Positions 1-36,424 of a DNA stretch of 64,000 nucleotides are shown piece after piece (position 1 is the first letter of the stretch; each line of letters starts with the position of its first letter). This DNA is from Macrostomum lignano (Eukaryota). Under the pieces are notes generated by a model that had not been told where the DNA came from, searched no databases, and saw nothing but the letters and a program-made list of their open reading frames with translations. The stretch lies in NCBI GenBank assembly GCA_002269645.1, contig NIVC01000273.1:1-64000 (forward strand). The letters run 5' to 3'. Position numbers and translations under genes: made by a program.

Positions 1-160
1 TTTTAGAGCAGGGGGGTTGTGTGCACACTGGCGCACTTTAAGCGACATAGGCACACAACCGGCGGGAGGCATTACTGCCCATTCCGACGACTCCCCTGAG
101 CAGGAACACAAGCGCGCGGATACGTACGCAGGCACACACTCAGGCACAGGCACAGACTCT
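1..160 (-). mobile_element. Partial copy of a dispersed tRNA-derived SINE-like repeat
   Basis: ACACAACCGGCGGGAGGCATTACTGCCCATTCCGACGACTCCCCTGAGCAGG...GGATACGTACGCAG matches 58221-58310 directly and the reverse complement of 35220-35350. Confidence 0.6.
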
Positions 161-720
161 GCTTGGGGCATGATCGGGAACTCTGGGCTCAATCTGGAGT
201 ATTTCTCAGCAGGGGATCCTTTGTGGCTGTGAGCGAGGCTGACTTGCGACTTTGATTACTAAGAGTAGTATGAGGCGAACATGTACTGTCTCTAGTTTAG
301 ATTGCTCAGGGCGAAGGGACGCGTCAGCATGGGGTTGCAACCTTCCTACTGCCATTCTGTGCCAAGACTCGCTAATCCCTCTACTGCACAAACACGCCGG
401 CCCCGCAGCACGCACTCACAGGCGGGCTTTGCACGGGAGAGGCCATTAGCTTACCCAACTTCCTTATGTTTTGCCACCCCGGGAGAAAGGCTTAGCAAGC
501 CATGAGTGAAATGATGGTGAAAGAGTGAATAATGATGAGGTTAGTTAATAGTTAATAATTAGGCCCTTAGGCAAGTAATCAGGCAGTTAGGCGGCTTCAC
601 TATTGAGTAAAAATACAGCAAAAGGTACGGTATTACAACTGGCTCAGCTCTCTAATCAGACAATGGAAAAATAGGCAAACTCCGGATAAGCAAAGGCAAT
701 TAGAGCACAAATCAGTAATA

Positions 721-1692
721 CTTCGGGTGTGTCATAAGTAATGTCACTGCAGGCCTCTGTCTAAAATATGTAGGCACATGGACTTGTGGGTAGCGTAGCT
801 GCAAAGTATACTTAGTGAAGCAATACCAGTGCATTTGAGACGTGCATAGGTTGTTTATGGCCCAAGCTATCGCAAGAATACGCCAAGCAGATTTAGCAAG
901 TGCAACGCGATGAAAAATCGTCTATGCAGCGAACAAAAATCACCATGAATCTCGACAAGACGCCTGCATCAAGCAGATCCGCAAGGTGTTCAGCAGGCGG
1001 GGCTTGAATGACATCCTAAACTGCCTGGTTGCTGAGGATGAAAGCTGGCTCCACCTGGATGGCAAGGGCAGCAAGGCAGACAATCGCTGCTGGCTGGGAG
1101 CTGGGGACTCCAGGGCGACTGTGACCAGGAAGTCCATCTTGGACAAGAAGACCATGCTGCTGGTAGCCTTCACGCCAAACAAACGAGTCTCCATCTGCAC
1201 AACTCCACCGAACACCAAAGTCGATGGCCAGTATTTTATCGACTTTATACGGCACACTGGAGACCTCTGGCGCAATCTCCGGTCAAATCCATGTCACCTG
1301 GACGAGGTTCTGTGGCAGATGGACACCGCACGGCCGCACACCTGTAAGGCTTTTTCGAATTTTCTGCTTGCACGGCGAGTGAATATGCTCTGACAGTCCC
1401 AACAGCTCAGACTTCAACTTTTGCAAGAGATTCCTGTTCAAATGGCTGAAGGCTGATTTTTCCAAGAAGAGTTTCGCAAACCATGAAGAGGTCAAACAGG
1501 CCGCGTTGCACTGGTTACGGCAGTTGGAGGAAAAACACCTGCAGGCTGAGGTGGACAAGCTGTATGAGCACTGCCAGAGGGTGATTGATATTGGGGGACT
1601 CTATGAATTGTTGAGTGATACAGTTTTTTTCATCTGCGATTGCAAGTTCGTCTGTTTTCACATCAGTGACATTACTTATGACACACCCGAAG
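721..1692 (+). mobile_element. Internally deleted Tc1/mariner DNA transposon (972 bp)
   Basis: Perfect 29-bp TIRs CTTCGGGTGTGTCATAAGTAATGTCACTG (721-749) and its reverse complement (1664-1692), flanked by TA on both sides (719-720, 1693-1694); encloses a transposase remnant. Confidence 0.92.
986..1610 (+). pseudogene. Mariner-type DDD transposase catalytic-domain remnant
   Basis: AEDESW (first D), MDTARPHT (second D, cf. HDNARPH), then a stop at 1391-1393 and a frameshift into FLFKWLK...KLYEHCQRVIDIGGLY (mariner C-terminus). The SPDLxPxD motif is degraded and no HTH region is seen. Confidence 0.85.
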
Positions 1693-2129
1693 TACGAAGT
1701 AGGAACTTACCGGCAGCTGCACAGAGAGAGAGAGAGGCGGAGTGACCGAGGGCGGCTGTAGGCTGCAGTCAGGCAGATGGTGAAGCGACGAGGCGCTGGT
1801 GTAGATCAGGCGAAGCTGATGATGCTGGGCGGTATCAGACCGCTGGCCAATAGGCGAGCTCACTCGGGGAGTTGAAGATAACTTGGCGGTAACAGACCGC
1901 GGACCGGCAGGGATTCGTCTTATAGACGAATGGGTCAGAACTCAGTCTGATGGCAAGTCTAAAGAAAGACTAGGAGCCCGAAGGTGGGCAAAAGTTGAGT
2001 CTTCTCATGCCGAAAACCGCCTCCTTTTATAGCCTTCCCAGCCGCCGCTCCAAGGTCGTTTCCATGGCTCCCTCTCTCTGATTGGCTGCCGGCCGAATGA
2101 CGTCAGAATGAGTCATGATGAGAAACATG

Positions 2130-2810
2130 AGACCGGCATAGCAACATGAGAAAAAGGGAAATTGCGCAATCCGGAGGTGGGGTGGGGGAGAATTGGCGCA
2201 GCGGGTGGTCGCGAAAGTGTTGCGCAAGCAAACATTGAGAACAATAGGGCTGGGGTCGAGAACAAAGGAATTGGAAATCGGGGATAATTGGGGAGAATCG
2301 AGGACAATGGAAAAGTAAACATTGGAGAAAAGGTGATAATTAGGTGCGAAAACGAGAACAAAAGAAAGAGAAAATCGGAGAAAATGTGATAATTGGTGGG
2401 GGTAAAGAGAACAAAAGAATCGAAAACGAGAACAATAGAAGCGGAGGTGGGGTGGGTGTCGCATGAGAAATTTGGGGAGGAGAACAATGGCATGAGAAAA
2501 GGTTGCGCAAGAGAGGGGGATGAGTCATCGATGAGTCATCGAGGGAAGAAGGGGTCACACGACTTGCGTCACCGTTTGGGAGTTTGGGAAGGGATGGGAG
2601 ATCGGTGAGCACACAAAATACTGTAAGTAAACGCAGGGAAAGGGGGGGACAGCGCAGGAAAATAGTGCAGAGAGACAAAAAGAGGGGGAATAGGGAGAGT
2701 ACAAGAAGAATAGGGTGGGGCGCAGGGGAGATAAGGTAGAGGGGAGGGTACAGAGAGGGACAGGGAGCTCCGGAAAGGCAGGTGTGGCGGCAGGGGAGAC
2801 GGAACCAAGG
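2130..2810. repeat. Purine-rich (GA) low-complexity tract with loose internal repeats
   Basis: Recurrent GAGAACAA/GAGAAAA/GGGGAG motifs; the overlapping ORFs are Leu/Ser/Pro low-complexity. Confidence 0.7.
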
Positions 2811-4272
2811 CAGCAGGGGGGTGCAGCAGAGCGGGAGTCTCCAGGCCTGGTCAGAGACCTGGCCGAGTCTCGACAGCTCTGTGCAGGGGGGTACGCGGGA
2901 TAGGAGGCACCTTCGAAAAAGTTCCCATGCCCTATCCCGCGACCAGAGCGTGGTTACATCACCTCTCTATAATTCTCTCATCTCATATCTCATTTCATCT
3001 CAACTGTCCCTCTATCTCTCATCTCCTCTTGTCACACGTATCTTCTCATCTAATCTCTACTCTATTTCCCTCCTTTCCTTTCACACCTGGCCGGCAGCCA
3101 AAAGCTAGAATATTTCTCTGTCCCTCAAGGTAAAAAAAGTTTTCCGGCCACCCGCATGGCGTAGCCTCATTTCGGCCTGAGCTTTAGCTAGCCGTTGAAT
3201 AATGGCCGAATTACGAGCGCGCGTGACAACTCCGCAACATGTTGAGGCTTCCACTCCAAAAAACAGTTTCAGGGTGAATGTCATTTCCCACACTTACACA
3301 TGTTATATATTAGCTTTCACCTTTGATTCTTTTTGTCATGCTTTTAGCTTCGGAACTTTATTTCATGTTTAGTCGTTTAATAGATATAAAATCGACTAGT
3401 TTTGATGATGAGCAGTGCTTTACTCTGGCTGCTGTCGGTGGTTCCTCTTGCTATTATTCGCTGCGCGCTTCCGCCGGTCGGGGCGTGCGCGCTTGTGCCA
3501 CAGTGTGCAAAAAATGCACAGGTGCGTACAATGGCTATGCGTACTTTCCCCGGCTGTTTTAGTTACCAAGCGCACGCAGTCTCGTCCGTAGTAAATGAAA
3601 GTGGCTGGATATGTGTACATTAACGAACGACGCCGAGGAAGGAAGGCAAAGGCACGGCACGGGCGAGGAAGACGAACTTGCAAACGCGAGACAGGGTAGC
3701 TGGGCCAGAGCAGCCCCGCGCGGCCTAAAAAACCCCCACGGGCCGGGGGGGGACTCAAGCACCCACCCCTCCCCCCGCCAGACAGAGCACGCACACCGGA
3801 GAGCCCACACAGGCCCGGGGCGGCCCCTCCCCGACGTGTTCGCTAACTCAGAGTAGCAACGCTACTCACCACTTAAGCAATACAAGCGGTAGGGCGCAAC
3901 AGCCGCAACACCCAACACCAGTCGAAAGCTGTCGTTCTTTCTGTCAACGCCTGTTTCACTGCGCTTTTCTCTTTTCTTTGCTCTGCAATATTCATAAATC
4001 TCGTACTGCAGCAGAGACGAAGCTAACTGTACAATTATTGCAGAAAAATCTATCCACATGACTGCACACAATGTACTCATACTGTACTCTGGAGGCAAAA
4101 TTTGGGCAGTAATAGTTGTAGACAATGTACTTCCGTTTAAGTCTCGTCTACCGCTGTAGTTTTCGTTTTTAAAATAGAATCTACGAGCTTTGGCCTAGCG
4201 ACTAGGGAGCAGCTTTCTACAAGCACTGTAAATCTGGTGCAGTATTTTGCAATCAATTCAATCTGCTTTAGC

Positions 4273-5188
4273 ATGCAGAACTTGGGGCCGCAACTCGGAG
4301 CGATAGGAGGCTCTCTGAGCAGCACCTGCCTTTGCGTCAAAGGCCTGAGTCCCGATAGCAGCGACCTCACTATTCGGCAACTGATGACTCAGGAAGCTGG
4401 AGTTCCCGATCACGCCATCGTGTATTCTCAGGCTATTTTAGACAAAACCACCGGCCATTGTAGAGGTTTGATTCCATTATATTATGTTTATGCTATTTTA
4501 TTGTTGAATGCATTTATGTTTACTCCTAAGACCATCCGCTAAACCCTAACCGACACCAGGCCTCGGCTTCGTTGAGTTTCAAAACGAGTCGCAGGCCAAC
4601 CAGGCTTTGGAGGCGATTCAGCGGCGGCCAGTGCAGGGCGATAGACGCTTGCAAATCGGATTCGCTCTTGTGAGTGCTAGTGTCATACGTCAGCAAACAT
4701 TTTCGTAGGGAAGTCCACAAAATATGAAAGTAAAGCTTATAGTTAAATCATTTTTAATGGCTATTCAATCTAAACAGGAGAACGAGAAGGATCTTACTAG
4801 CGTGTACTTGTGGAATTTGCCGGTGTCGTGCAGCGATTATTGGATTCGACAGGTCCTTGTCAATAGCCTCATCATGAACAGAAAGATTACTCAGCCGATT
4901 AAGTCCGTCAAGGCCCTTCCAGCCAATCCAAAGTACTCAATCGGATTCATTCGCTTCGGAGAAGAGAGCGATGCAGCAGCAGCGATTGAGTTCTTTATCA
5001 GAAACGGTCTCGAGTTCAGCTATCGGTTCGGATGCTCGGACCGGCTTGCGGCTAGACTGGCAGACAAAGCAAGCCCCAGAGCAAGGCTTGATCAGATCGC
5101 TCGGCTGTCTGCCAATCAGCGAGGGTCTATGAATGATGGCCGGTCAATGAGCTTTGAGGACATCGTAAAGCCGAATCCGGTTCTCTCT
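4273..5188 (+). CDS. Copy A: tandem RRM (RBMS/alan shepard-like) RNA-binding unit, exons 4273-4465, 4560-4669, 4778-5188
   Basis: GT-AG introns 4466-4559 (phase 1) and 4670-4777 (phase 0) join CLCVKGL...QAILDKTTGHCRG|LGFVEF (RNP2/RNP1) and VYLWNLP...SIGFIRF...RLAD. Donor GTGAGT at 5189. The same intron positions occur in copies B/B'. The 3' end is unresolved (a small exon may start at 5261). Confidence 0.8.
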
Positions 5189-5534
5189 GTGAGTCAACTC
5201 GATCTGCTGAATTTTAACTACAACTATAGAACGAATCGATTTAATCCTATTGTCTGACAGGGGAAGGCTTTGCAGAGCGATTCAAAAGCAGCAAAGTGCG
5301 TACATCATTGTGCTATGTGAAACACAGAAACAATCGCTTTAAAGCCCAGACAGGAAGTTAGAAAACAGATGCTGTGTTCCCTTATCCGTCGTACCAAGTA
5401 ACGTTGCTTTGTCACTAGGATACTCGAATGTACTCGTATATGATGCATTGTGCTTTTCTTTATCAATTCACCTATATGTACTTTATTCAACTTTATTTTA
5501 CCGATTATCCGAATTTAATTACTTTTTACATCAG

Positions 5535-8093
5535 GAAATCTCTGCGGAGCCACTCCAGCTAAAGGACGCTGAGAGCCCCTTCAAGTGGAATGCTCACGAA
5601 GGCTCACTAAGAACTCCAGAGGATGTAATTCGCAAACTGTCTGAAAAACTTAAGCTGGAGCCGATGCTATCCGCAGCGTATGGAGGTCTGCTTGCTGCTT
5701 ACCATTCTGCTGCTTCTCCAAGCCGCAAACTGATTGATTTTAGCAAGGCAAGAAAGCACCTGAAGGATGCAATAGAAGCTGCCAATAGTGCCCATCAACA
5801 TCACGTTAGGTGCGACTTTGTCCTGGAGGCCATCTCTCTTCATCTGGATCAACAACAAAAGAAAACGTCTCCTGAGTTCGATGAACGCGTAAAGGCTCTG
5901 GGTCAGGCTTGGAACGTTCCAGATAATGCACAGCGAATCGAAGTCAGAGCCAATGCATTTCACGTCAAGGCACTGGCACTGTTTAACCAAGGGATAGAGA
6001 AATACGTCCAGGCAGAGGAAGCTGTTAGGACCAGCTTGAGCTTGCGACCCGACAATTTCATGTGCGTCTACCTGCTGGCGTACATTTTAGCGCGCTTGCG
6101 CAGATACCGCAAAAACAGGGCTGCTGCGGGTCCAGAAGAGCTGCTCCTGTGGAAGCGGAGCGAGGAGCTCGCTAACTTGCAGAACCTGGACGATGCGCCC
6201 AAAGAAATTCGGCTGTATTACCAGCAGTTTTTAATTAACTATTCAGAGGCACTTTTGAATAACGCTGACCTAAAGGAAAAGTGCCAAAGCTTGGCTTCTG
6301 AAACGTTCCTGGCATTAAAGAACCTGAACGCAGAAGATTTAGAATGCCACTACCGAATCGCTCTCAAATGTGAAAAAGTGTTTCGAATTCTCAAATTGCA
6401 ATTGAATGACACTCAAACCCCACGAAGCATCTTACTCAGCCTAAAAGATGTAACAAAAAACTCTCAGTTATTTTTTTCATTGGCAAAACTGATGGAAAAC
6501 GAATCTGACTATGAAGAGTATGAGAGTTTGCTCGTCCGAGCTCAGCAGGTGGCGCCCGAGCCTGGACACATTTGGGTAGACGTGTGTTTGCAGGAATACC
6601 GAGAGGAAAGACCGAATGATTTCACTCACGAGTTTATTTTGGACGAGTTTGATACGATGATAGCCAAATACAAGGATAATTTTAGAAACAAGTCTGCAAT
6701 TCAGTATGCCAAGGGAGCCTACATGTGTCGGCGGCAGCTCGTTGACAGCGGCTTTGAGTCGATGGTCGAAGCAGTTCAAGTGTGTCCTGATGTCAGAGTT
6801 TACTTTCCTCCTTGGAAAAAAGAAAAAATATTGCAAATTCTATGCGAACGGACAGAAAGACCCGAACTGGAGGCTTGGTTCAGGCTGCACATCATGAACT
6901 GGGATTTTCAATCTACACAAATTATTTGCGAACGCTTTCAGAAGGCGCTGCAAAGTGAAAACTCGGATCACCAGCTGGTATATGAGCATCTTGGTCTGTT
7001 GTACTTTCGCCTTCGAGACTTTCAAGCTGCAGAAGAAAATTTCCGAAAACTTCAGTCTGAAAATCCTCGCAGAAACTCTCTGCTGTCGTCCGCTTTGCTC
7101 AAACGTGCCGAATCAAGAGATGAAGCTGAAAAGAGAGACTTGATTGTCGAGGCTCTCCGACTTGGAAACCCGGAGGCGTGCCAGCCCGCTCGACTCTTGC
7201 TGGACAACCGACTGGATCATCAGCTGCGGTTCCCTCTAGAAGCCATCAAGCAGAAGTACTGTCCTAAAGACCCCGAGAGTGAGATGCAGATCGTGCCGTG
7301 GCTGTTCAGCAAGGACTCGTACGAGCTGCTCGCTCTGATCAGCATCGCGTCAGAGAAGAACTATGAAAACTACTCAAAAACGTCGCCTCTGGTCCAGACG
7401 GATCTGCGGAAATCGAGACTGGCTCTGGAGCGTCTAGAGCAGCGCGGGAAACAGACTGAAAGCAAGTATTATAATGCCATCATGGAAACCCTGAAACTCG
7501 CAAAAAGTGCAATGGATGGATTAACTGCAAAACTGGATGGCTACGAAATGGAAAAGAAACTTGATTACTTCCCATACGGCTTCCGGTATATGACTGTAAA
7601 AAAGGATGAGAGCAAAAAGTTGATTTGCGGATTACAGAAACAAAGCCACGAAAATCGAAGAACGGAGATAAATAAGAAACTTTCAAATTTGCTCAAGTTG
7701 AAGGCATCCGCCACTGATGAAGCGAATCAGAGAGTAAATGCGCTCGTTGATTTGCTGAGCACTCGAGAATCAAAAGCGTTTCAGTTCCAGCAGCCATTTG
7801 CTTGGCTTGTGATCTGGCAGGAGTTGAGAAACAAAGCGGAGCACTCGAGCGCACAGAAGCCCATGAAGACTTTGATTCCAGAGTTATTGGAGGCCTGGAA
7901 CTGCGACCCAGATTGTGCTGGAAGCGTCGCGCACATGGCTGCGGAGTTCGCTGAGGAGACACGACTGATATTCGAGGCCGAGACTGAGGCGCTTCGAGCA
8001 GCCACTGGTAAGACCGGAGTACCAGTAGAAGATTTGAACTCAGCCCAGTCGAGACCCACCAAGAAGTTTTTGGCTTTGCATCTTTCTGACTGA
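5535..8093 (+). CDS. Copy A: single giant exon, IFIT-like TPR protein with C-terminal HEPN-like domain (852 aa)
   Basis: Uninterrupted ORF beginning at a polypyrimidine/CAG acceptor (AG|GAA ATC). TPR motifs include YEHLGLLYFRLRDFQAAEENFRKL and AEEAVRTSLSLRPDNFMCVYLLA. RNKAEH at 7827-7844; stop at 8091-8093. Confidence 0.8.
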   Translation, partial: EISAEPLQLKDAESPFKWNAHEGSLRTPEDVIRKLSEKLKLEPMLSAAYGGLLAAYHSAASPSRKLIDFSKARKHLKDAIEAANSAHQHHVRCDFVLEAISLHLDQQQKKTSPEFDERVKALGQAWNVPDNAQRIEVRANAFHVKALALFNQGIEKYVQAEEAVRTSLSLRPDNFMCVYLLAYILARLRRYRKNRAAAGPEELLLWKRSEELANLQNLDDAPKEIRLYYQQFLINYSEALLNNADLKEKCQSLASETFLALKNLNAEDLECHYRIALKCEKVFRILKLQLNDTQTPRSILLSLKDVTKNSQLFFSLAKLMENESDYEEYESLLVRAQQVAPEPGHIWVDVCLQEYREERPNDFTHEFILDEFDTMIAKYKDNFRNKSAIQYAKGAYMCRRQLVDSGFESMVEAVQVCPDVRVYFPPWKKEKILQILCERTERPELEAWFRLHIMNWDFQSTQIICERFQKALQSENSDHQLVYEHLGLLYFRLRDFQAAEENFRKLQSENPRRNSLLSSALLKRAESRDEAEKRDLIVEALRLGNPEACQPARLLLDNRLDHQLRFPLEAIKQKYCPKDPESEMQIVPWLFSKDSYELLALISIASEKNYENYSKTSPLVQTDLRKSRLALERLEQRGKQTESKYYNAIMETLKLAKSAMDGLTAKLDGYEMEKKLDYFPYGFRYMTVKKDESKKLICGLQKQSHENRRTEINKKLSNLLKLKASATDEANQRVNALVDLLSTRESKAFQFQQPFAWLVIWQELRNKAEHSSAQKPMKTLIPELLEAWNCDPDCAGSVAHMAAEFAEETRLIFEAETEALRAATGKTGVPVEDLNSAQSRPTKKFLALHLSD

Positions 8094-8984
8094 AAGCTTT
8101 GTTTATCTATTGACCATTTCTGTGTTTTCGCTTGAGGCTTTTCTGAATTATGTACCGACAATGTTGCATGTAGTGTCCTGAACGGCGCGTTCAGACCGGA
8201 TACTGACTGGAATATGACTAACTACTGACTAAAGTTGCTGCTGCCCGAACGCTTTTTTTATTTACATGTACTCCCGTACTCAGTCTCGGCACCCGCTGTA
8301 GATTTTTAAGGGTTTTTAGCGTTGACAGTTTCGTATTTGCTTTGCTTTTTAACTTCGACCTGTTTCGTTATTTTTTCTTACCTAACAAATTATGTAATTT
8401 TCCCTTTGACCAAGAAGTGCACTGTTGTGCAGCCTTCATGTACTTTTATTAATTTTGTCTTTTGCGAGTTTAAAATCACTTTCCAATTTTTTATTAATTT
8501 GCTCATTGAAGTTACTCTTAGCAGGTCCTGGTTTCTTCTGAGTTCGAGCAACTTCTCGCTTCATTCATTTGGCCTAATATATAAGGTGTGATAAAATTCC
8601 ATTGCCGTTTTTAATTGAAGCACGCAGCCACACACAACGCTGCTGAACCAACATGGACTTTTAGCTATAAGTACGAGCTATTAGATTCCTTGATTGACTT
8701 TTGTAAGCCCTCAAAATTTTTGTACGCTTATGTTTTTCATGTACTAGGCTTTTTGGCTCTCTTTAGGCCTTTCTAAATCCCACTGATATGCCACCAAAGC
8801 TGTCCAATGGGTTACTTCGGCCATCTAAGTCAATTCACAACGTCACCACAAAGTAACAGTGCTTTGCTTTTCTTATTAAATCCAACTGTTGATACCAAGT
8901 TGTGCTACTGCTGTTAACTGTTTCTTAGAATCAGTCTGTGAATTAGTCGCTTAGTACATTTTGAAAGTATTCAACGTATATAGT

Positions 8985-9716
8985 CTGGTAGCGTCTAATG
9001 TATTATTCTGGTAGCGTTCACTATATAAGTCTGGTAGCGTCTATTGTATTATTCTGGTAGCGTCTATTGTATTATTCTGGTAGCGTCTATTGTATTATTC
9101 TGGTAGCGTCTATTGTATTATTCTTGTAGCGTCTATTGTATTATTCTTGTAGCGTCTATTGTATTATTCTTGTAGCGTCTATTGTATTATTCTAGTAGCG
9201 TCTATTGTATTATTCTGGTAGCGTCTATTGTATTATTCTGGTAGCGTCTATTGTATTATTCTTGTAGCGTTTATTGTATTATTCTTGTAGCGTCTATTGT
9301 ATTATTCTGGTTGCGTCTATTGTATTATTCTGGTAGCGTCTATTGTATTATTCTGGTAGCGTCTATTGTATTATTCTGGTTGCGTCTATTGTATTATTCT
9401 TGTAGCGTCTATTGTATTATTCTGGTTGCGTCTATTGTATTATTCTGGTTGCGTCTATTGTATTATTCTAGTAGCGTCTATTGTATTATTCTTGTAGCGT
9501 CTATTGTATTATTCTGGTAGCGTCTATTGTATTATTCTTGTAGCGTCTATTGTATTATTCTGGTAGCGTCTATTGTATTATTCTGGTAGCGTCTATTGTA
9601 TTATTCTTGTAGCGTCTATTGTATTATTCTTGTAGCGTCTATTGTATTATTCTGGTAGCGTCTATTGTATTATTCTTGTAGCGTCTATTGTATTATTCTG
9701 GTAGCGTCTATTGTAT
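8985..9716. repeat. 23-bp minisatellite, ~32 copies
   Basis: Unit GGTAGCGTCTATTGTATTATTCT with few variants (CTTGTAG, CTAGTAG, GGTTGCG) and no spacers. Confidence 0.95.
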
Positions 9717-24005: not shown

Positions 24006-25577
24006 TGTATTGACAGTAATAACCAAGCCTAATATTGATACTACCAATAAAAACAACCGTGTGTATTTCTCGCACGTTAGCGTCTAACTTAGCGAGCTGT
24101 CTCTCTTTTAATCCAGCTCAACTTCAGCTCGCAGGCTTGCCCATAGATATAGTTCGTACTAAAAGGCATACATATCATTCCTCCTTTTCTTTAAAAAAAA
24201 TTGTTCAGTCAAAACAGTTCAGTTCAGTTAATTCGCAACAAAAAAATCCGGTTTCTTCAGTTTTGACCGGTCACGCAAAACACGTTGGTTCGGATGCTGT
24301 TTCACATCTTGGCCGTCCTTTGGCTTGATATCGAAGCTTGATGACGCGGCTAACTTTCGAGTTTTGTCTATGGCCCGCGAAGACTTGCCAGTCTGACCAT
24401 GATGCTCTAGATTTGGTCCCGTCGATTCAGCTTCCTCTTTTGCATCCTTTTTCAACTTGTAGCTATTCTTGGCATTGTGTGCTTGCGTTAGTTCTGTGTC
24501 GAAATCACACTGTGGCTGGGGCACAACTTCGGTTTCAGATTTGATCAGATGATCCACGTGTCGTTTCCAGATTTGTCCGTTGACTTCCACGTGGTAGGAC
24601 AGCGGCCCAGTCTGTTTCAACACTTTGGCTTGAGCCCACTTGTTTTCTTTTTCCATCCTGAAATCAAAAACTAGCACTATATCTCCAGCCTGAAACTCTC
24701 GGTGAGGAATATGTTCCCGGCGCATCATCTGCTTACTTTGCGAATCCAGGACTCTCCCGTATGTGTCTGGCTTCAGGAAGTCCAGCCTTGTCCGTCTTGC
24801 ATACGCAAGCATCATCTCGGCAGGTGACTTGCCCGTTGTGCTATGAGGCGTGCTTCTATAGCGGAATAGGAAATTGTGCAGGCTCAGCATGGCATCACCG
24901 TGGCTCTTCATGCCTGCTCTGATCGCATTCTTGGCTGTTTGAACCATTCGCTCACTGAGCCCGTTGGTTCTTGGATGTCCTACAGCACTGAAGATGTGAT
25001 GGATGTTATTTCGCTTGGTGAATTCAGCAAACTCCTGTGATGCAAACTGGCTTCCATTGTCGGTCAGTATCTGTCGAGGTATTCCAAACCGAGCAAATGT
25101 CTCTCGAAAGCGTTGAATGGTGTTCGCGGCACTGGCAACTTTCATTGGAAAAACCTCTACCCATTTTGATGTGGCATCTACGATTACCAACCAATTGAAT
25201 CCGAAACACGGTCCGAAAAAATCTGCCTGAAGTCTCGTCCATGGCTTTTCTGGCCAACTCAACGGGTGAACAGCAGATTCTGGTGGTTTGCTTCGCTGCA
25301 GTTCGCATCCCTTGCATTGTTTCACAGCTCTTTCAATCTGTTGGTCGATTCCCGGAAACCAAACGTGCAGGCGAGCGATCGATTTCATCGATACAATCCC
25401 AGGGTGTCCTTCGTGCAGCAGGTCCAAAACTTGGTGTTGGAGGCTAGATGGAATGATGGCGCGTATACCCCAGAAGATGACTCCCTGCTCAAGACAGAGT
25501 TCGTTTCCTTTCTGACGGTATATCTCAAGCTCAAATTCACATTTCTCCGGCCAACCGTTCTGGCAGAACCTGATTAC
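24006..25577 (-). mobile_element. 5'-truncated Gypsy/Ty3 LTR retrotransposon (integrase, PPT, short 3' LTR)
   Basis: PPT AAAGAAAAGGAGGAA followed by TGATATG... (LTR ~24177-24006 ending ...CAATACA); pol is truncated at 25577 exactly where the B' duplication begins. Confidence 0.8.
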
Positions 25578-25607
25578 CTGCGGGGACAGACAGCATCGGC
25601 AGAGCAT
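24228..25607 (-). CDS. Gypsy (Mag/K02A2.6-like) integrase ORF, 459 aa; the first 10 codons come from the duplicated segment
   Basis: HHCC finger LHEGHPG...CKGC; catalytic ADFFGP, TDNGSQF, NGLSER; no internal stops. Confidence 0.88.
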   Translation of the reverse strand: MLCRCCLSPQVIRFCQNGWPEKCEFELEIYRQKGNELCLEQGVIFWGIRAIIPSSLQHQVLDLLHEGHPGIVSMKSIARLHVWFPGIDQQIERAVKQCKGCELQRSKPPESAVHPLSWPEKPWTRLQADFFGPCFGFNWLVIVDATSKWVEVFPMKVASAANTIQRFRETFARFGIPRQILTDNGSQFASQEFAEFTKRNNIHHIFSAVGHPRTNGLSERMVQTAKNAIRAGMKSHGDAMLSLHNFLFRYRSTPHSTTGKSPAEMMLAYARRTRLDFLKPDTYGRVLDSQSKQMMRREHIPHREFQAGDIVLVFDFRMEKENKWAQAKVLKQTGPLSYHVEVNGQIWKRHVDHLIKSETEVVPQPQCDFDTELTQAHNAKNSYKLKKDAKEEAESTGPNLEHHGQTGKSSRAIDKTRKLAASSSFDIKPKDGQDVKQHPNQRVLRDRSKLKKPDFFVAN

Positions 25608-25699
25608 TCAGTTCGGCAGCTTTATAATTTTTGATAGCTTGTGCAGGACAGGAGGTGTCGTCTGTGCAGTGTTGGGCAACTTCAATTGGTGCTTTGGCC

Positions 25700-28192
25700 T
25701 CACTTAGTGGTTGCTTTTTGAAGCTCCTCAGTCTCGGCCTCGAATATCAGTCGTGTCTCCTCAGCGAACTCCGCAGCCATGTGCGCAACGCTTCCAGCAC
25801 AATTTGGGTCGCAGTTCCAGGCCTCCAATAACTCTGGAATCAAAGTCTTCATGGGCTTCTGTCCGCTCGAGTGCTCCGCTTTGTTTCTCAACTCCTGCCA
25901 GATCACAAGCCAAGCAAATGGCTGCTGGAACTGAAACGCTTTTGATTCTCGAGTGCTCAGCAAATCAACGAGCGCATTTACTCTCTGATTCGCTTCGTCA
26001 GTGGCGGATGCCTTCAACTTGAGCAAATTTGAAAGTTTCTTATTAATCTCCGTTCTTCGATTTTCGTGGCTTTGTTTCTGTAATCCGCAAATCAACTTTT
26101 TGCTCTCATCCTTTTTTACAGTCATATACCGGAAGCCGTATGGGAAATAATCAAGCTTCTTTTCCATTTCGGAGCCATCCAGTTTTGCAGTTAATCCATC
26201 CATTGCACTTTTTGCGAGTTTCAGGGTTTCCATGATGGCATTATAATACTCGCTTTCAGTCTGTTTCCCGTCCTGCTCTAGTCGCTCCAGAGCCAGTCTC
26301 GATTTCCGCAGATCCGTCTGGACCAGAGGCGACGTTTTTGAGTAGTTTTCATAGTTCTTCTCTGACGCGATGCTGATCAGAGCGAGCAGCTCGTACGAGT
26401 CCTTGCTGAACAGCCACGGCACGATCTGCATCTCACTCTCGGGGTCTTCAGGACAGTACTTCTGCTTGATGGCTTCTAGAGGGAACCGCCGCTGATGATC
26501 CAGTCGATTGTCCAGCAAGTGTTGAGCGGGCTGGCACGCCTCCGGGTTTCCAAGTCGGAGAGCCTCGATAATCAAGTCTCTCTTTTCAGCCCCATCTCTC
26601 GATTCGGCTCTTTTGAGCAAAGCGGACGACAGCAGAGAGTTTCTGCGAGGATTTTCAGACTGAAGTTTTCGGAAATTTTCTTCTGCAGCTTTGAAGTCTT
26701 GAAGGCGAAGGTATAACAGACCAAGATGCTCGTACACCAGCTGGTGATCCGAGTTTTCACTATTCAATGCTTCGGTATAGAGCTGAACAATTCTCTGTGG
26801 TTCATCTGACTGCAAGTCAAGGTCCAGCATATGCTGCTGAAACCAAGCCTCGAATTCGCATCTGTCAGTCTTCTGGCTCAGATTTTTTAGCGTCTCATCT
26901 TTTTTCGATTTATGGATATGAAGTCGAACCTCAGGATAGACCTGCACCGCTTTGACCATTTCTTCAAAACCATCAGCAACGCTCTCTGTTTCAGAAAAGG
27001 TCATCATAAAGGCTCCCTTCGAGTATAGACAAACGGCTTCGTACCTGGGATAATCCTGATGATATCTTTCAGCGAGAGTGTCATACTCATTCAAAATATC
27101 GACGGCCGAAAACTTGTCGCTTCTTTTTTGTTTGAAGTTTTGATAATAAATATCAACCCAAATGTGTCCAGGCTCATAGGACAACTCTTGGGCTTTTATC
27201 AGCAGCTCTTCGCACCTTTCATCTTCTTTTTTCTCTTCAGCCAACATCGCTAATCTGAAAAGCAGATCAGAATTTTTAGTACCCTTCTCTAGGCGTTGCA
27301 ATATTTCCTGGAGTTCCTGCGTTTCTGGATGCTTGCGAATCTGAAAGATTTTTTCACACCTGAAGACAATTCGGTAATGTTCATCCAATACCTGAGTACT
27401 TATGTTTCTCAATGCTTGGTACGTGGCATTCGCGAGTTCCAGGCACTTGTCTTCTAAGCTCCGGTTGTTCAAAATAGCCTCCGCATAGTTTATTAAAAAC
27501 TGATAGAAGTACATTTTTGTTCCTTCATTCTTATACTGCCACCGGTGTTCATTTGCCAGATCATATGCACGATTCCACAGGAACAACTCCTCTGCATCAG
27601 CAGGCGTTCTGTTGTTGTGATGGCGACGCATCCGCGCACGAATATACGCCAGCAGGTAGATGCACATGAAGTTATCCGGTCGCAAGCTCAGACTTGCTTT
27701 CACAGCTTTCTCTGCTTCATCGTACTTTTTTATACCTTGGTGAAAAAAGTCCAGAGCTTTAACGTGAAAAACGTTGGCTCTGATCTCGATGCGCTTGGCC
27801 TCATCTTGAGTGTTCCAGATCTTGTTGAGGGCCTTGACGCGTTCAGTGAAGTTGAGTTGGTTCCGGCTCTGCTTAGCATCCAGGTTTAACTCAATGGCTT
27901 GCAAGACGAATTCGCATCTGACATGACCTTCATCTGCGTCTTTGCCATAGTCTACTGCGCTCTTCAAGTATTCCCTTGACTTTCTGAAGTCGATATGCTT
28001 ACGCCGATCGAATCTGGTTCCGTGATAAGCAGCCAGGAGGCCTTGATAAGCCGATGAGAGCATTGGCTCAAGTTTCAGTCGGTCCAAAATTGTGTCGATC
28101 ACATCCTCTATATTTTTGTCGGAGCCATCGTATGCGCACCATTTGAATGGGTTTTCGGCGTCTTTCAGTTCGAGTGGTTCCTTTGTGATTTC
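25700..28192 (-). CDS. Copy B': intact IFIT-like TPR-HEPN giant exon (830 aa)
   Basis: Acceptor AG|GAA ATC ACA at 28192; open to the TGA at 25700-25702; RNKAEH at 25871-25888. Confidence 0.82.
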   Translation of the reverse strand, partial: EITKEPLELKDAENPFKWCAYDGSDKNIEDVIDTILDRLKLEPMLSSAYQGLLAAYHGTRFDRRKHIDFRKSREYLKSAVDYGKDADEGHVRCEFVLQAIELNLDAKQSRNQLNFTERVKALNKIWNTQDEAKRIEIRANVFHVKALDFFHQGIKKYDEAEKAVKASLSLRPDNFMCIYLLAYIRARMRRHHNNRTPADAEELFLWNRAYDLANEHRWQYKNEGTKMYFYQFLINYAEAILNNRSLEDKCLELANATYQALRNISTQVLDEHYRIVFRCEKIFQIRKHPETQELQEILQRLEKGTKNSDLLFRLAMLAEEKKEDERCEELLIKAQELSYEPGHIWVDIYYQNFKQKRSDKFSAVDILNEYDTLAERYHQDYPRYEAVCLYSKGAFMMTFSETESVADGFEEMVKAVQVYPEVRLHIHKSKKDETLKNLSQKTDRCEFEAWFQQHMLDLDLQSDEPQRIVQLYTEALNSENSDHQLVYEHLGLLYLRLQDFKAAEENFRKLQSENPRRNSLLSSALLKRAESRDGAEKRDLIIEALRLGNPEACQPAQHLLDNRLDHQRRFPLEAIKQKYCPEDPESEMQIVPWLFSKDSYELLALISIASEKNYENYSKTSPLVQTDLRKSRLALERLEQDGKQTESEYYNAIMETLKLAKSAMDGLTAKLDGSEMEKKLDYFPYGFRYMTVKKDESKKLICGLQKQSHENRRTEINKKLSNLLKLKASATDEANQRVNALVDLLSTRESKAFQFQQPFAWLVIWQELRNKAEHSSGQKPMKTLIPELLEAWNCDPNCAGSVAHMAAEFAEETRLIFEAETEELQKATTK

Positions 28193-28803
28193 CTGAAATC
28201 AATTATTGGACAGTCAGTTAAGGTTTTGATTAATTATCCTTTTGAGAAATTCTCTTTAAGTAGAGTATGCTGTCTAATAGTAGGAGAAAGACGAATCGCT
28301 CCGGCCCTTTTAGCGTGACTTTAACAATATACATAGCAATAGTAATATGCTATAGTCTTCTCAATTGTCATATCAATGCATTAACGAGCTACTACTCAGC
28401 ATTATTCCCCTCAGTGCCACTCTGCATCATTCTCCTACTGTATTAACCTTCAGACTTTGCAAGTATCGAATGAGATAAGCGATAAGGATTCAAAGAACCA
28501 CAGCAGCATCTCAGCTGACAGCAGCTGCAAGTTGCATTAACATGTACTCGTATTTTGTAAGCTTGGTCAGTTCGTACTATTAGTATGAGGCTATATTAGA
28601 GCATTTATATCTTAATACGAGCTATCTAGCGCATATCACTAGTCTGGTGTAGGGTAAAACCGAGGCTTGCTTGACTTAGCCTGCAGAATAGGTTTGATGC
28701 AATCAAAAGGCTAAACGGTGTCCTTTTAGACTCGCTTTACTTAGGCAGCTACCCACCTCCAACCCTAATTACAATTGGGTAGTACAGCCATGAGGAAACT
28801 TAC

Positions 28804-30697
28804 AAGAAGATGCGCGCTCGGCTTCACAATATCTTCAAGGCAGACTGGTCGACCACCGACATCACGGGTCTTTTTTTCAGATTTTTTTTCTGAAAATTTA
28901 GCAGCAAGCCGCCCAGAGCATCCATATTTGTGGGAGAGCCTTAGCCCATTGTGATTGATGAGTTGGATAACACATGAAGCACTGTCCTCTGTTGTAAATT
29001 TCACAATGCCTGTTGAATAATATGGGTTAGCACGAAAAATCCTGAATGACAAGATCGTATCCTCGCAACAATTGCATTCGTATAGTAGAAACTGTCTAAT
29101 CCACTCTATCGTGCAGTTGACAGGCAAATTCCATACGAACATCTCTTTGCCGTCCTTTTCTGCCTCCTGTATTTTGTACACGGTGGGTGCTCGGCATTGC
29201 ATTTGAAATGCTGCGCTATCAGAAAGTTATGTCTAAAAAATATCGAAGACTCACCCGAGCGAATTCGACCTTCAATTTTTCCTGGCTGGCATGTTTCGTG
29301 TCTTGCAGCTGCTGAATATTTCTTACTGCCATCTTTGCCCGCTCTGTGTTTCGAAGTTCAGCGAAGCCGATCCCTAAATGTGAGTGAAAGTTCTCGTTCA
29401 CTTTTCTTGCTCTTCGACTACAGTTTCTTTGTTCTGAAGCCTTAATTTTTTTGGTTTGAAAGTGAGTACTAGTAGTTCACTATCATACGAGTATTATTTA
29501 TCATGATCTATTATAGTAGTTAGGTAGGTACTCACAATTAAATATTTTAAATTTGCATCGCTAATTTAGGGGTTGTAGACTAGTGGTCGACTGAAAGGTC
29601 GGGGCTTCGATTTTCTACTCACTTGGAACAATTTGTGTCCTTGAGCAAGACACTTGACTATGCATTGTTTCAGTTCACCCAGCTGTAAAATGGGTGCCAG
29701 CATTAGCTGGGGTAATTGAGGGTGCGTGGCGAGGTATCCAGTCAATCCGGCGACAGGACGATCCGGCGACAGCCAAAACAGCGACAGTCAATCCGGTGAC
29801 AATTCGTAGTAAAACCCTATTACATGTAAACCGGCTATTGTTACTTAAACAGATTAGAGAGAGCTCTGATTTTTATAATTATTACAATTGCTATTATTGT
29901 TATTAGTTATTATTATTTGATTTTTAATAGAATGTATGCAGGAATAGCTCCGATAATTGGAATTTAGCGGGTTCAAAATGCGCGGATTTCTGTCAACTAT
30001 TAACATATTGTTTTCTTATAATGATGATACATGTACATTTACATGTATTGCTTTAAAAATGGGAAACTGCATTAAATCATTTATTTTCACTAGGCCGCAC
30101 ACTAGTTTTTCATCTGCAGTTTGATGTGACACGGCCTAAACTGTCAGAAGTACGGACATAATGTACCATTTTTATTAGAAAATATACTGGTCGTCTAAAG
30201 TGAATTATTTACATGTAAAATTAAAATAGAGTTCATGTAAAGTTTTATTTGTATCTAAAATCCGTAAAATCTACTATACAAAATCTGTCGCCGATTTGAC
30301 TGTCGTCGGATCGTCTGGAAGCCCGTGGCGACCCCCCCCCCCTCAGTCCTTGGACTGAAAAACTGCTCAATAGCTGCGGCTATAAATTATACGAGTATAT
30401 ACGTCGCATATTATTACAATCGCAAACTAATGCACTTGGCATACTTTGCATGATAAAACAGACTACATAAGAAATTGAAATCGCACCTTTACACTGGCCA
30501 GATTGCGAATCCAAGATGGCTTGAGCAAACACTATGGAGTGATCAGGAACTCCGGCTTCGTGCGCAATGAGCTGCCGAATTTTCAGATCTGTTGTGCCGG
30601 GAGACAAACCCCGGATGAAGATTCGGGTGCTGGACATGCGACTGTTGCTGTTGGAGTCACTGGCGGGCGCACTGGCGGCGGACGATGAAGCTTGCAT
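28804..30697 (-). CDS. Copy B': tandem RRM unit, exons 30697-30487, 29373-29255, 29166-28804
   Basis: Same exons as copy B at offset 13978/13979. Confidence 0.8.
29568..30364 (+). mobile_element. CORE-SINE with nested MITE (29733-30323), duplicate of 15590-16385
   Basis: Same TSD CGTGGCGA and TIRs as in copy B. Confidence 0.7.
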
Positions 30698-33600
30698 CCT
30701 GAAGCTGTGTTGAGGAACACCTTAACTCTTGGAAGGATGTAGAGTAGAGCGAGCTTGTGTGCTTTGGGTTTGGGGTTAGCTCTACTCATAAGGCCCAGTC
30801 AAGGAGTTCTTAATTTAGCAAGTTTCAAATGGACACTCACGGGGGGGAAGAAACCGATAACAAATATGGCCGCTTGAAAAAGGCTCCTTTGCTTCCCATC
30901 CCTCAGTTCCGCCTTCCCTGCCGAGGCCCGCCTCCATCTCTGGGCCTGCCCAACTCTCCAAAATGTACAGGGGAAACCTAGACCCTAAGAGTTAAATGGG
31001 CTAGTTAGTACGAATTGAGGAACGGAGGAACCGAAAGCAAGCTGGTGTACGTCTCTGGTGTACAACCCCCGTGACCACAGCACTGGCCGTATTTATTGGG
31101 AAAGGGTTTCATTGGGGATTCACTATACTATAGGCCCATAGTGCATCAATGTAAACTCACTTGACTTATCACTGAACTTCTTGGCCAGGGAATACTTTAA
31201 ATATGTATGTAACTCTCCCCACTGCGGTCGGGGCAACCCTGCAACCCACGCCGAGTCACTCCCAAGAGCCAGCCAATTCCTTACTTAGCCCCAGGCCGAG
31301 AATTTATCCATATCCAAGTTTTGAAGCTTTAAAGGCGTCGTTTTACAAGGTCGAAATTTCATAAGGAGGAAAACTACTTCATCGTTCTTGTCAAATACAT
31401 TTTCGTACTGTCCTTGTGAAATTTGACCTTATGAAGTCCCTTTGCTAGAGTTTTCGATGTTGTGAAATTTCGACCTTATGAAGGAATGTGCTTTCGACGT
31501 TGTGAAACTTCGAGTTTGTGAAACCCCTCCAATTCAAATACTAGTGGACCCAAAATCAGGCAACAAAATTTACAATTAAAATAGCTAATTTGACAGAAAT
31601 ATATCGCATCCCACATACCGTAAAGATACTCTGTGATGGAGACGAATAGAAGTAAATTGCATGCAACACAGTAAATAAAAGGCTTCAAGATACTTCGAGG
31701 AGTTATTTAAACAGGATTTAATGAAATTATTTAAAATTTTATTTTCATTTACCTATAAGGTTTTAACGTAAGCTTGAAGGATTCAAATTGGCTGGCTTGC
31801 GAACACTTGCAGTCGTTTTATTTCGATCTGAGATGTGGACTTGCGCTTGCCAACGAGCAATGGCCGATTAGTCGTAATTAGCAAAGTGGCGTTCTTCTAA
31901 TAAATGAGTTCTAAGTTCCAATAGAAGATAAGGGAAAGAAAGAAGACATGAGCGTGCATGAATAACGGCCGAGAGAGCAGACACATGTGTACAGATTTTA
32001 CATTATACGACGACTTTTTAGGCCAGCGATATTTACCTTTCTATTCATTTTATGGCAACGCATGCTCTTCGCACTGTCACTGTCCTTTCTGTGCCTAATC
32101 TTTTCTGAAGAGTGAACACTAGACATTTTCATAAGTATTCTGGTCAAACCGAGTTTTACTCAGTTGGTCCCATAGATCTTATATTCCTATCATAGATCTG
32201 TTAAAAGGTAAAGGTGTACGAGACGTCGTATGGTTTTGGTTGGTCCTCAGTTTAAAGTCGAATTGAATTCTCCGTAGCTCTGTCAAAAAATCTTTTGACT
32301 CCGTATTTTGTTACCACTTGTGTTGGCGGTAAGGCGTTAAAACTGTGGGATGAGCTGGCTTGGGGTTGGTGTATTAGGAGGCGGGCTTCGGTGTTATGAA
32401 TTTTATGAAGTGTCGGTCTTGTGAAGGATCATGCAGTAGTTTTCGACGCTGTTAAATTTCGGTCTTGTGAAGGCAGGTGTCTTTCGGAGTTATAAACTTT
32501 GGTCTTATGAAATTGACCCTTTATTCCTGTCTCATTTTGTGACCCTAAGATGTCTTGTCTTCTCAGATTTTTTCTTTCGCTTTTCTTTATCTGACTGATA
32601 ATTGTTTCGCAACCATAAATTCGCTTGCAAGTGGCACTGAAAGCTAGCTTGTTTATTGTTCTTACGTGTATATTCTATAAGGACTGATTCAAGTGCCTGT
32701 GGGTTAACGCTCCACCAAGCTCAGTGAGCAAAAAATACGAGCGTAATTTCTTCCCGTGAATACAATGTGCCAGACCTGCTGAGTGAGTACCGCGATGAAA
32801 AAGCTGCTGTGCCAATATCAGACGGCTTAGACGATGCTACAGGTGGGAAACTCTGGTGCTCGACCTCGACGGGGTGCTGCTCTTCCCACCAATGATGACG
32901 GCTTTCGGTTGTCGGAGAGTCGGCTTAGCATGGTTGGCTGCGTCGAAAAGCTCTGCGCAGAAGACCTCTGTGCTCTGCGTTGCAGACGACATCAAAACTG
33001 ATATCATCTGCCGAGGCGCTGAGTTCAGCAGTTCTTCTACCTTGGCTGCCTGTTTCAGGGCCGTCGGTGGAAATCTGCGGCGTCGCCGCGGGCTTGCCTG
33101 GGCTCGCTTTCTTAAAGCGACGCCAATCCTGCAGTTCGAGACAGAGAGCGACGTTTGGTCAGGCGGTGGTCGAGGCCATGCTGTTTTAAACGTCGAAACC
33201 TGGACGCTGACGGGCTCGTTCGAACAGCATCTTGAAGGCACACGCACCGCCTATAGTATGCTCCTGTTATACTAGAACGTGCATACGAATAGCATTAGCA
33301 GTAGAACTACAATCCCCCTAACAATTGTTTTTGCTGCGCCGGAACGGAGCAACGTCGGCACACAAAATTCAAGAACACGGAGTAACTTCTTGTTCCGCAC
33401 TTTCTCAAACAAGAATAAATACTCGATACAGATATTCGACGATTCTGCCAAAAGGTCGGATTTTTTCATAAGTGCCAGTGTATTCAGTACACCCCTGCGT
33501 GCGCAAATCAGCACTGCGCCTCAGTGCAGCCTTGCCAAGCCTCCAAAATTCGTTTGCACATCGATCACATGTGTCTGCATCAGCTCTGACTTCGTTGATC

Positions 33601-35656: not shown

Positions 35657-36424
35657 ATGCGGTGCAACGAAGCGCTCCTGCTGCTGGTTTGTACGGCTTT
35701 GCCCTCTAGTCAAGCACTGCAGACTGTGTTCAGTTCCGCCAGATTGCACAGCGACTTGGCTCCCGTGGCCACGGAGACGGCACTGGGCAGCAGCAGGCTC
35801 AAGTGCTCTGAAGGCTGCAGTTTGAGGCCGTTCTGCTTCGGCTTCAGCTGGCTGCGGGGTTTGTGCCGCTTTTTCAACGTGTCGGCATTCTATAATGAGG
35901 CTGCCTGGAACAGCACAGAGCCCTGCCATATTTACACAATGAAGTTCAGTAAGTAGGAGTTTCATATCTGATTGTAGTACCTGTTTGTACCTGTGATTAC
36001 CCCCAGTGACTTCTCTTGTCTGACGAAAATTGCAGCCAAACTGAACTTTGTCACCTGCAATCAGAGCACCGTAGCTCAAGGCGGAGTTTGCGAGAGAGCC
36101 TTCGACGGAAATAAGAACCAGAACTGGTGGGGTGGCCTCGGGTGCATCCTGACCCAGGTTGGCGTGCCCGGCTGGTGGGAGGCCGAGCTGGCCACCGCCG
36201 CCCGCATCTCGCACGTCACCATCGTCAACAGGCTGGACTGCTGCAGCAGCCGGCACAACAAGATGTCGTTGCGCGTGGACGATGTGGAGTGCTGCCGAAT
36301 GAATCTTGCCGTGACATTCTCAACTGCCAACTTCAGCTGCAACGCCTTCGGCAGTAGGTTCGGCATGTACAACCTGCAGTCGCACGAGCTCTCCCTGTGC
36401 GAGGTGGAGATTTTCGGGCAGTAA
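35657..36424 (+). CDS. Secreted PAN/Apple + F-type lectin (fucolectin/FTP) domain protein; exons 35657-35952 and 36007-36424
   Basis: Hydrophobic signal peptide; CSEGCSLRPFCFGFSW..GLC (PAN); 54-nt phase-2 GT-AG intron; AFDGN, WWEAEL, NRLDCCSSR and LSLCEVEIFG are FTP motifs. Confidence 0.85.

Follow-up and report, generated by a model that had tools for sequence, protein, structure and literature searches.

A gene family of the flatworm Macrostomum lignano predicted to join an IFIT-type clamp to RNA-binding modules

The window analysed here, 64,000 nucleotides of DNA from the flatworm Macrostomum lignano (GenBank assembly GCA_002269645.1, contig NIVC01000273.1, positions 1 to 64,000), carries three copies of one gene, hereafter called A, B and C. 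The first 560 amino acids encoded by the giant last exon of copy A are likely, as judged from comparisons of family profiles and from a predicted structure, to share remote homology or fold with the clamp of the vertebrate IFIT proteins.

IFITs are textbook interferon effectors, and we know of no interferon system in flatworms. The protein TTC22 is grouped with the IFITs in some classifications, and some invertebrate proteins carry an automatic label 'IFIT-like'.

The one systematic survey in the literature searched found IFITs in jawed vertebrates only and dismissed earlier invertebrate candidates as generic tetratricopeptide repeat (TPR) proteins (PMC3688568); beyond this 2013 survey, searches of the literature for invertebrate or Macrostomum IFITs turned up no report of flatworm IFIT relatives. 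What appears to be new is a remote homologue of the IFIT fold in a new phylum and in a new domain context, as suggested by sequence profiles and a structure model.

Results

Family members and the CHFTW motif

With a profile of copies A and C, HMMER was run exhaustively over 1.84 billion representative proteins and gave ten hits, consisting of M. lignano paralogues, one protein from an ENA assembly and weak generic TPR matches. The family members found in this way were P0006 (PAA92423.1, E 8e-42, aligned from residue 6), P0009, P0011 and P0008; the longer cluster-mates P0018 (M. lignano PAA70671.1) and P0017 (ENA) were used for P0009 and P0008, respectively. In a word-indexed homologue search the exon matched nothing but five close M. 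lignano RRM paralogues, and a capped search with the family profile listed the same five.

The pentapeptide CHFTW is described as invariant among the IFITs and lies in loop L1 between helices alpha1 and alpha2 (PMC11462223). The N-terminus of P0006, MSNLEKLEELECHFTW, contains LEELECHFTW and with it the literal ECHFTW hallmark, while that of P0017 reads MNPLECHFNW and has the ECHFNW variant; both occupy the alignment columns of the string LQLKDAESPFKW in the window gene. The 8-mer ELECHFTW is common to P0006 and IFIT5 (LLELECHFTW) and lies at the same distance from the N-terminus in both. In the window copies just F and W of the pentapeptide are retained, in SPFKW (A) and NPFKW (B and C). P0006 exceeds the Pfam TPR_2 threshold, and both P0006 and P0011 have long RGG repeats at the C-terminus.

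Profile comparison with IFITs

An alignment of the N-terminal approximately 560 residues of five family members (A3) was searched as a profile against 177,635 distinct PDB sequences and matched human IFIT5 with E 9e-9, profile positions 7-179 being collinear with IFIT5 residues 13-187. The sole sequence above IFIT5 was an engineered 13-repeat consensus TPR, which outranks it because many weak repeat matches sum. The next natural TPR proteins (BBS4, CDC27 and PRPF6) followed at E 2e-4 to 1e-3, and IFIT1 and IFIT1B were not among the matches at E ≤ 10. Family-profile scores were highest for mammalian IFIT5 (33-39 bits) and ranged from 3 to 19 bits for IFIT1 and IFIT1B, with IFIT1B lowest (approximately 3 bits).

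Alignment of A3 by hhalign with 105 amniote IFIT1/IFIT5 sequences, gathered by a search with IFIT5, gave a probability of 95.3 %, P 2.3e-8 and 308 collinear columns, in which family positions 8-333 pair with IFIT5 residues 12-367. With the IFIT alignment reversed P was 0.53, with its columns shuffled 0.3-0.5, and with 34-column blocks permuted, which breaks the order and keeps the TPR character, 1e-4 to 5e-2. Removal of the motif columns from the family profile left P at 1.3e-5 and the collinearity intact. Leaving out one member at a time gave P from 4e-9 to 1e-4, the weakest value being that without P0006, and single members alone were not significant. In the reverse direction the IFIT hidden Markov model (HMM) matched P0006 with E = 1.6e-4 (Z = 177,635) in three collinear segments, and phmmer with P0006 alone against PDB found designed consensus TPRs only.

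A preliminary description, made by eye from the window sequence, had proposed an IFIT-like N-terminus for copy A on the strength of three strings, all of which are present in the same open frame of the giant exon. These are LQLKDAESPFKW (exon amino acids 7-18, nucleotides 5553-5588, with the SPFKW loop at 5574-5588), GGLLAAY (amino acids 50-56, nucleotides 5682-5702, starting 32 amino acids past W18, with LLAAY at 5688-5702) and SLSLRPDNFMCVYLLAYILARL (amino acids 167-188, nucleotides 6033-6098, with LSLRPDN...ARL at 6036-6098). Each by-eye pairing recurs in the HMM-HMM alignment, namely PFKW with HFTW, LLAAY with LLAYV, and LSLRPDNFMCVYLLAYILARL with LEVEPDNPEFNIGYAITVYRL (LSLRPDN...YILARL with LEVEPDN...ITVYRL). 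The description had also staked the resemblance on a TPR region closer to IFITs than to generic TPR proteins, and at the family level this is what the profile search, hhalign and the predicted fold gave. The proposal of an IFIT-like N-terminus thus holds for the family profile and the predicted fold but not for the window sequence alone (hhalign P 0.014-0.018).

Predicted structure of the clamp

A template-free AlphaFold2 (AF2) model of exon amino acids 1-560, made with the five-member alignment, which contained no IFIT sequences, was all-helical, with a mean predicted local distance difference test score (pLDDT) of 85.9 and a predicted template modelling score (pTM) of 0.75. Modelling of the whole 852-amino-acid exon with a two-sequence alignment gave a pLDDT of 40, and that model was excluded from the fold search.

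The first four Foldseek ranks in PDB were all IFIT5 (4HOR, 4HOT, 3ZGQ and 4HOQ, E approximately 1e-6), with target-normalised template modelling scores (TM) of 0.61-0.64 and a root-mean-square deviation (rmsd) of 6-7 Å over approximately 550 columns that covered the whole of IFIT5; sequence identity of the clamp to IFIT5 was 13-16 %. IFIT1 entries reached TM 0.46-0.57. For SPINDLY, OGT, Ctr9, APC/C subunits, BBS4 and SKI3 the local E values were similar, yet TM stayed within 0.10-0.48 and rmsd exceeded 13 Å. A viral structure library yielded generic giant-virus TPR and Sel1 proteins only, with TM ≤ 0.44 at comparable lengths; the highest viral TM, 0.52, came from one 285-residue fragment over 308 columns. 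By its global match to IFIT5, the modelled region has the character of a non-superhelical IFIT-type clamp, that is, three TPR subdomains and a pivot.

Results that weigh against the IFIT relationship

Several results weigh against the relationship. Aligned by hhalign with the IFIT profile, exon A by itself or together with copy C gave the P of 0.014-0.018 mentioned above, which is not significant, and the IFIT link of the window protein is, on these sequence comparisons, transitive via its paralogues. Most of the signal comes from P0006, without which P is 1e-4, and the family profile was built on just five sequences. The family is so far known from M. lignano and one ENA contig. Training of AF2 included IFIT structures, which makes the model only partly independent of the sequence signal.

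The residues that line the RNA pocket in IFIT5 are also largely replaced. Residues tested by mutagenesis in IFIT5 (table 5 of PMC9677429) were mapped through the hhalign alignment, which is a remote one. K150 corresponds to N, H, C, C and R across the five members, R260 to N, N, Y, H and S, and Q41 to L, I, T, T and F; R253 is N in four of the five, T37 is V in four and L in P0018, and H287 and Q288 are replaced as well. A change of the T37V type abolishes binding in IFIT5 (PMC9677429). The residues kept are R186 (R187 in the family, where it is invariant), Y156 (Y157) and Y254 (Y236), and Y250 has become an invariant F. R186 is among the three energetically strongest contacts between IFIT5 and RNA (PMC9677429). 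Because the main cationic and polar pocket residues are replaced, recognition of 5'-triphosphates in the manner of IFIT5 is not predicted from the sequence. Residue conservation likewise lends no support to a parallel with the basic RNA tunnel of IFITs, for which the preliminary description had suggested looking.

Other comparisons of the window sequence by itself were likewise negative for IFITs. In BLASTP against human IFIT1 (a sequence identical to PDB 5W5H) the best match of exon A had E 0.088 and covered one generic TPR helix, leaving the N-terminal motif unaligned, and the IFIT HMM gave exon A an E of 25. Searches of all PDB sequences by phmmer with exon A and with a two-sequence profile found yeast Tom71 only and no IFIT. 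Pfam TPR matches in the exon were all below threshold and lay mostly at amino acids 467-513, with weak ANAPC3 and TPR_17 matches at 139-194; amino acids 479-512 matched Pfam TPR_1, TPR_2 and TPR_8 and Tom71 weakly. The resemblance seen by eye in the window sequence by itself is not above chance at this level of sequence comparison.

Gene structure of copy A

The product of copy A has 1090 amino acids and is encoded by four coding exons (Table 1), the first three of which account for 238. Close protein matches to the giant exon were M. lignano models annotated as 'RRM domain-containing protein' only, with 56-96 % identity. Exon 1 is identical to amino acids 1-66 of the M. lignano model P0001 (tblastn, 100 %). 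The Pfam RRM_1 domain was recognized in P0001 at amino acids 21-91 (E 6e-9, 36.1 bits against a cutoff of 20.7), residues which window exons 1 and 2 encode at 100 % identity. The second module, in exon 3, was not detected by Pfam, and its label 'RRM-like' is therefore a by-eye call. Three public gene models of M. lignano, P0001-P0003, use the junction PVLS|EISAEP (5188|5535). Just 3' of gene A lies a 23-bp tandem repeat (GTATTATTCTGGTAGCGTCTATT) of 32 copies with 94 % match (8976-9716).

IFIT genes consist of two exons, the first containing the ATG and 2 nucleotides and the second the rest (PMC3688568). The preliminary description had seen a similar single-exon architecture in copy A. The parallel is weak and goes no further than one large exon holding the entire clamp; the three upstream exons are coding and the intron before the large exon is in phase 0. 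In P0006 the ATG lies within the large exon and residues 1-1036 are encoded by one exon. An intron position inherited in common with IFITs was rejected, since the two introns are in different phases, the exons upstream encode protein and P0006 is without the intron. A simpler explanation of the junction intron is that RRM exons fused onto a single-exon ancestor of the P0006 type. With its RRMs and C-terminal domain, the 1090-amino-acid copy A protein also departs from the stand-alone size of IFITs (approximately 470-490 amino acids). Because most pocket residues, the gene structure and the stand-alone size differ, the protein cannot be counted among the IFITs proper.

Table 1 Coordinates of the gene copies and their parts in the window
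Feature	Position	Strand	Remarks
Copy A coding exon 1	4273..4465	+	Start codon and first part of RRM1; donor gt at 4466
Copy A coding exon 2	4560..4669	+	Remainder of RRM1 (GFVEFQNES...LQIGFAL); acceptor ag 4558-4559, donor gtgagt at 4670
Copy A coding exon 3	4778..5188	+	Second RRM-like module (VYLWNLP...IGFIRFGEE) and linker; ends PVLS; next intron phase 0
Copy A giant (last) exon	5535..8093	+	2,559-nucleotide open frame, 852 amino acids; acceptor cag 5532-5534; stop codon 8091-8093
Predicted IFIT-like TPR clamp	5535..7214	+	Exon amino acids 1-560; profile, hhalign and AF2/Foldseek evidence
C-terminal helical domain and stop codon	7215..8093	+	Common to family; no known-family match
Probable conversion tract	6954..8056	+	Against copies B 11743-12783 and C 25654-26761; blastn, 95-97 % DNA identity
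Copy B giant exon	11723..14214	-	1-nucleotide deletion near 12466 shifts frame
Copy B upstream RRM exons	14787..16829	-	tblastn of P0004
Copy C giant exon	25700..28192	-	Intact, 830 amino acids
Copy C upstream RRM exons	~28804-30697	-	tblastn of P0004

The C-terminal domain

The C-terminal helical domain, approximately 290 amino acids long, is common to P0006, P0011, P0018 and the genes of the ENA contig, with the family-wide signature W..W...N...H ... AH.AAEF.EET. In copy A it includes W..W..LRNKAEH as well as VAHMAAEFAEETR, the signature of the family. Even at E ≤ 10 it matched nothing in Pfam or among PDB sequences, apart from scattered chance Pfam hits.

The string WQELRNKAEHSS (window 7815-7850, exon amino acids 761-772) has the Rx4H form of HEPN/KEN RNase motifs. 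RNase L and Ire1 are examples of HEPN nucleases with this form. Within the family N and H of the string are invariant, while R is V in P0006, P0011 and P0018 (VNSEKH/VNEEKH), so that RNKAEH is confined to the window subfamily. A HEPN or nuclease reading of the domain was rejected, as the R is not conserved and no HEPN/KEN family of Pfam matched; on the same grounds, the nuclease domain implied in the preliminary description found no support.

Copies B and C and gene conversion

Copies B and C lie whole within a 5.2-kb segmental duplication of 99.67 % identity (11601-16802 and 25578-30774). The variant motif LELKDAENPFKW, given in the preliminary description for a copy 'B', is indeed present in both minus-strand copies, at approximately 14161-14196 in B and 28139-28174 in C. 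The frame-breaking deletion of copy B may mark a pseudogene or an assembly error.

Over the first approximately 470 codons copy A has only about 50 % protein identity with B and C and synonymous sites are saturated; DNA identity in the 5' 1.4 kb of the exon is only approximately 60-67 %. From nucleotide 6954 onwards the copies are 95-99 % identical in DNA, synonymous sites included. The sharp boundary inside the exon indicates, from the sequence pattern, that the 3' half of copy A was homogenised with B and C by gene conversion, which is favoured over selection because synonymous sites are equally identical there. For the same reason, the idea that purifying selection produced the 97-99 % identity of the C-terminal halves was rejected. 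The segment singled out in the preliminary description ended at 6950, which coincides with the start of this tract.

Retroelements are located among the family copies. Retroelement remains with Pao/BEL peptidase_A17, aspartic protease and integrase zinc-binding open reading frames (ORFs) lie at 17959-22023 on the minus strand (18-22 kb), and a complete-looking integrase ORF (rve and H2C2; 24228-25607, minus strand) ends 93 bp from the stop codon of copy C. A reverse-transcriptase ORF at 36821-38140 on the plus strand also represents retroelement remains.

Family members outside the window and other window features

Besides the three copies in the window, family loci include tandem copies on the ENA contig and several more elsewhere in M. 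lignano. The contig ctg185802 of ENA ERZ25074608 (732 kb, GC 38 %, eukaryotic) carries at least three tandem members at 1-11395, which lack RRMs, combine an ECHFNW-type clamp with an AHWAAEFAEQT C-terminal domain and have been fragmented by a prokaryote-style gene caller. The gene model of P0018 has a hydrophobic insertion rich in Ala, Val and Ile at amino acids ~390-450, after the first half of the clamp, and a run of PQAVSDA repeats at ~700-800, ahead of the C-terminal domain; these may stem from wrong joining in the model or represent one more variant of the architecture. P0007 (5020 amino acids), with 17 weak matches to exon amino acids 613-668, was taken as a coiled-coil or low-complexity artefact.

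Elsewhere in the window, an ORF at 35993-36424 (plus strand), which probably belongs to a lectin-like gene as one of its exons, encodes a galactose-binding domain of the F5/8-type-C, NedA-like kind (Pfam PF22633, E 4e-7). The 18 kb from approximately 40000 to 58000 are strongly C-rich on the plus strand, with GC skew down to -0.57, and are made up of degenerate satellites, whose periods are 16, 27-31, 110-111 and 171 bp and which yield long spurious Ser-, Leu- and Pro-rich ORFs. A 57-bp repeat at 62466-62865 (7 copies, 93 % match), which has an in-frame Pro-, Thr- and Ser-rich unit of 19 amino acids (DQVHPSPPTTEEKPSDSAT) and no Pfam match, could be a mucin-like coding repeat.

Discussion

The copy A protein would consist of an RRM and an RRM-like module, an IFIT-type clamp of approximately 560 amino acids, presumably remotely homologous to vertebrate IFITs, with IFIT5 the nearest of them, and beginning with the structural equivalent of the CHFTW loop, and a helical C-terminal domain of approximately 290 amino acids. 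From member to member, one shared core of clamp and C-terminal domain appears to be equipped with varying RNA-binding modules: the window gene has N-terminal RRMs, P0006 and P0011 have C-terminal RGG repeats. The IFIT-like clamp would probably grip single-stranded RNA or an RNA end, and the conserved C-terminal domain would provide an effector or oligomerisation function. Varied appended RNA-binding modules, an IFIT-type clamp and the invariant R187 together argue for a family of RNA-binding proteins. While fold and remote homology were found by comparison, RNA binding by the clamp and a role in RNA surveillance or defence are what we infer; judged from sequence, RNA binding by the clamp itself is likely but unproven, and the explanation as a whole, with RNA binding by the protein included, is favoured by a little over even. 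The many copies, the diverged clamp halves and the intervening retroelements would at most fit a role that evolves fast and may be defensive.

The closest alternative, which we nevertheless consider unlikely, accepts the IFIT-like fold and makes it a protein-protein scaffold that recruits partners, as many TPR proteins and the IFIT2/IFIT3 heteromers do, RNA being contacted through the RRM or RGG modules only. The loss of most IFIT5 RNA-pocket residues suits this explanation, as does the attachment of separate RNA-binding modules in different paralogues, given which the core itself may not bind RNA, and by our own count the invariant columns of the family overlap IFIT5 RNA contacts no more than expected by chance. 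It accounts less well for the invariance of R187, the equivalent of a strong IFIT5 RNA contact, or for the closed clamp topology that the model predicts over the full length. The relationship itself is denied if the protein is a generic, fast-evolving TPR protein whose resemblance to IFITs, ECHFTW included, arose by convergence or chance and not by common descent. TPR proteins readily cross-match, earlier invertebrate claims ended in just this way (PMC3688568), identity to IFIT5 is just 13-16 %, no single member reaches significance against the IFIT profile, and P0006 finds only designed TPRs by phmmer. Such an origin is improbable in view of the eight-residue ELECHFTW match at the same N-terminal position, the collinearity over 308 columns that stays significant even without the motif, the 4-6 orders of magnitude lost when IFIT blocks are permuted with TPR character kept, and IFIT5 as the only globally matched fold in PDB.

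The least probable of the three alternatives goes further than RNA binding and regards the protein as a functional analogue of IFITs, in which the clamp senses the 5' ends of non-self RNA and a HEPN-like RNase at the C-terminus destroys the bound RNA. An IFIT-like fold, the Rx4H form of LRNKAEH in the window subfamily and the multi-copy arrangement of divergent sensor halves with a homogenised C-terminal half would fit it. It is opposed by the lack of any match to HEPN or another nuclease family at E ≤ 10 or to a PDB sequence, by the unconserved R (VNSEKH/VNEEKH in paralogues), by the unconserved 5'-ppp pocket residues and by the attribution of the C-terminal near-identity to gene conversion, selection not having been demonstrated. 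A wider scenario, likewise rather doubtful, is one in which the IFIT clamp predates vertebrates and interferon and flatworms have kept an ancient lineage of it, its ECHFTW hallmark intact in some members, as self-contained RNA-surveillance proteins. These would be made of an RRM or RGG module, an IFIT-like sensor of RNA ends and a C-terminal effector of a novel kind that might be an RNase, and the family would have expanded and diversified under conflict with viruses or with the retroelements that abound in this genome.

A flatworm family with ECHFTW, similarity to IFIT5 at the profile level and a predicted clamp like that of IFIT5 would mean that the fold arose well beyond the vertebrates. 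Such a family would repeat the pattern of Mx, viperin, cGAS and STING, each of which proved older than first thought. It would also place the clamp in a novel context, joined to RRM or RGG modules as well as to a conserved but uncharacterised domain. As M. lignano is a laboratory model in which RNA interference and transgenesis work, the function is directly testable. If the similarity should be convergent, the family would still be a useful example of a recurring N-terminal cap motif in TPR proteins.

Among known systems, generic TPR scaffolds (OGT, SPINDLY, Cdc27 of APC/C, Ctr9, BBS4 and Tom71) have canonical TPR units in common with the flatworm clamp, but match only locally (profile E ≥ 2e-4) and are without an N-terminal loop of the CHFTW type. 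IFIT1 and IFIT1B, which bind cap0-RNA, belong to the same fold class and form part of the IFIT profile, with much lower family-profile scores. Human IFIT5 (3ZGQ, 4HOQ-4HOT), a monomeric clamp for 5'-ppp single-stranded RNA, differs in that the window copies have a degenerate form of the motif (SPFKW in A) and in that their clamp is approximately 80 amino acids longer, fused to two RRMs and a C-terminal domain of approximately 290 amino acids, and encoded by a gene of four coding exons in a flatworm host. It is at the same time the best profile match in PDB and the sole full-length structural match there, with an L..L.CHFTW-type loop at the equivalent N-terminal place, literal in the paralogues, and with the LLAY string, the KGW..K.G.KYY-type helix and the LE.EPDN...Y..RL repeat in collinear order.

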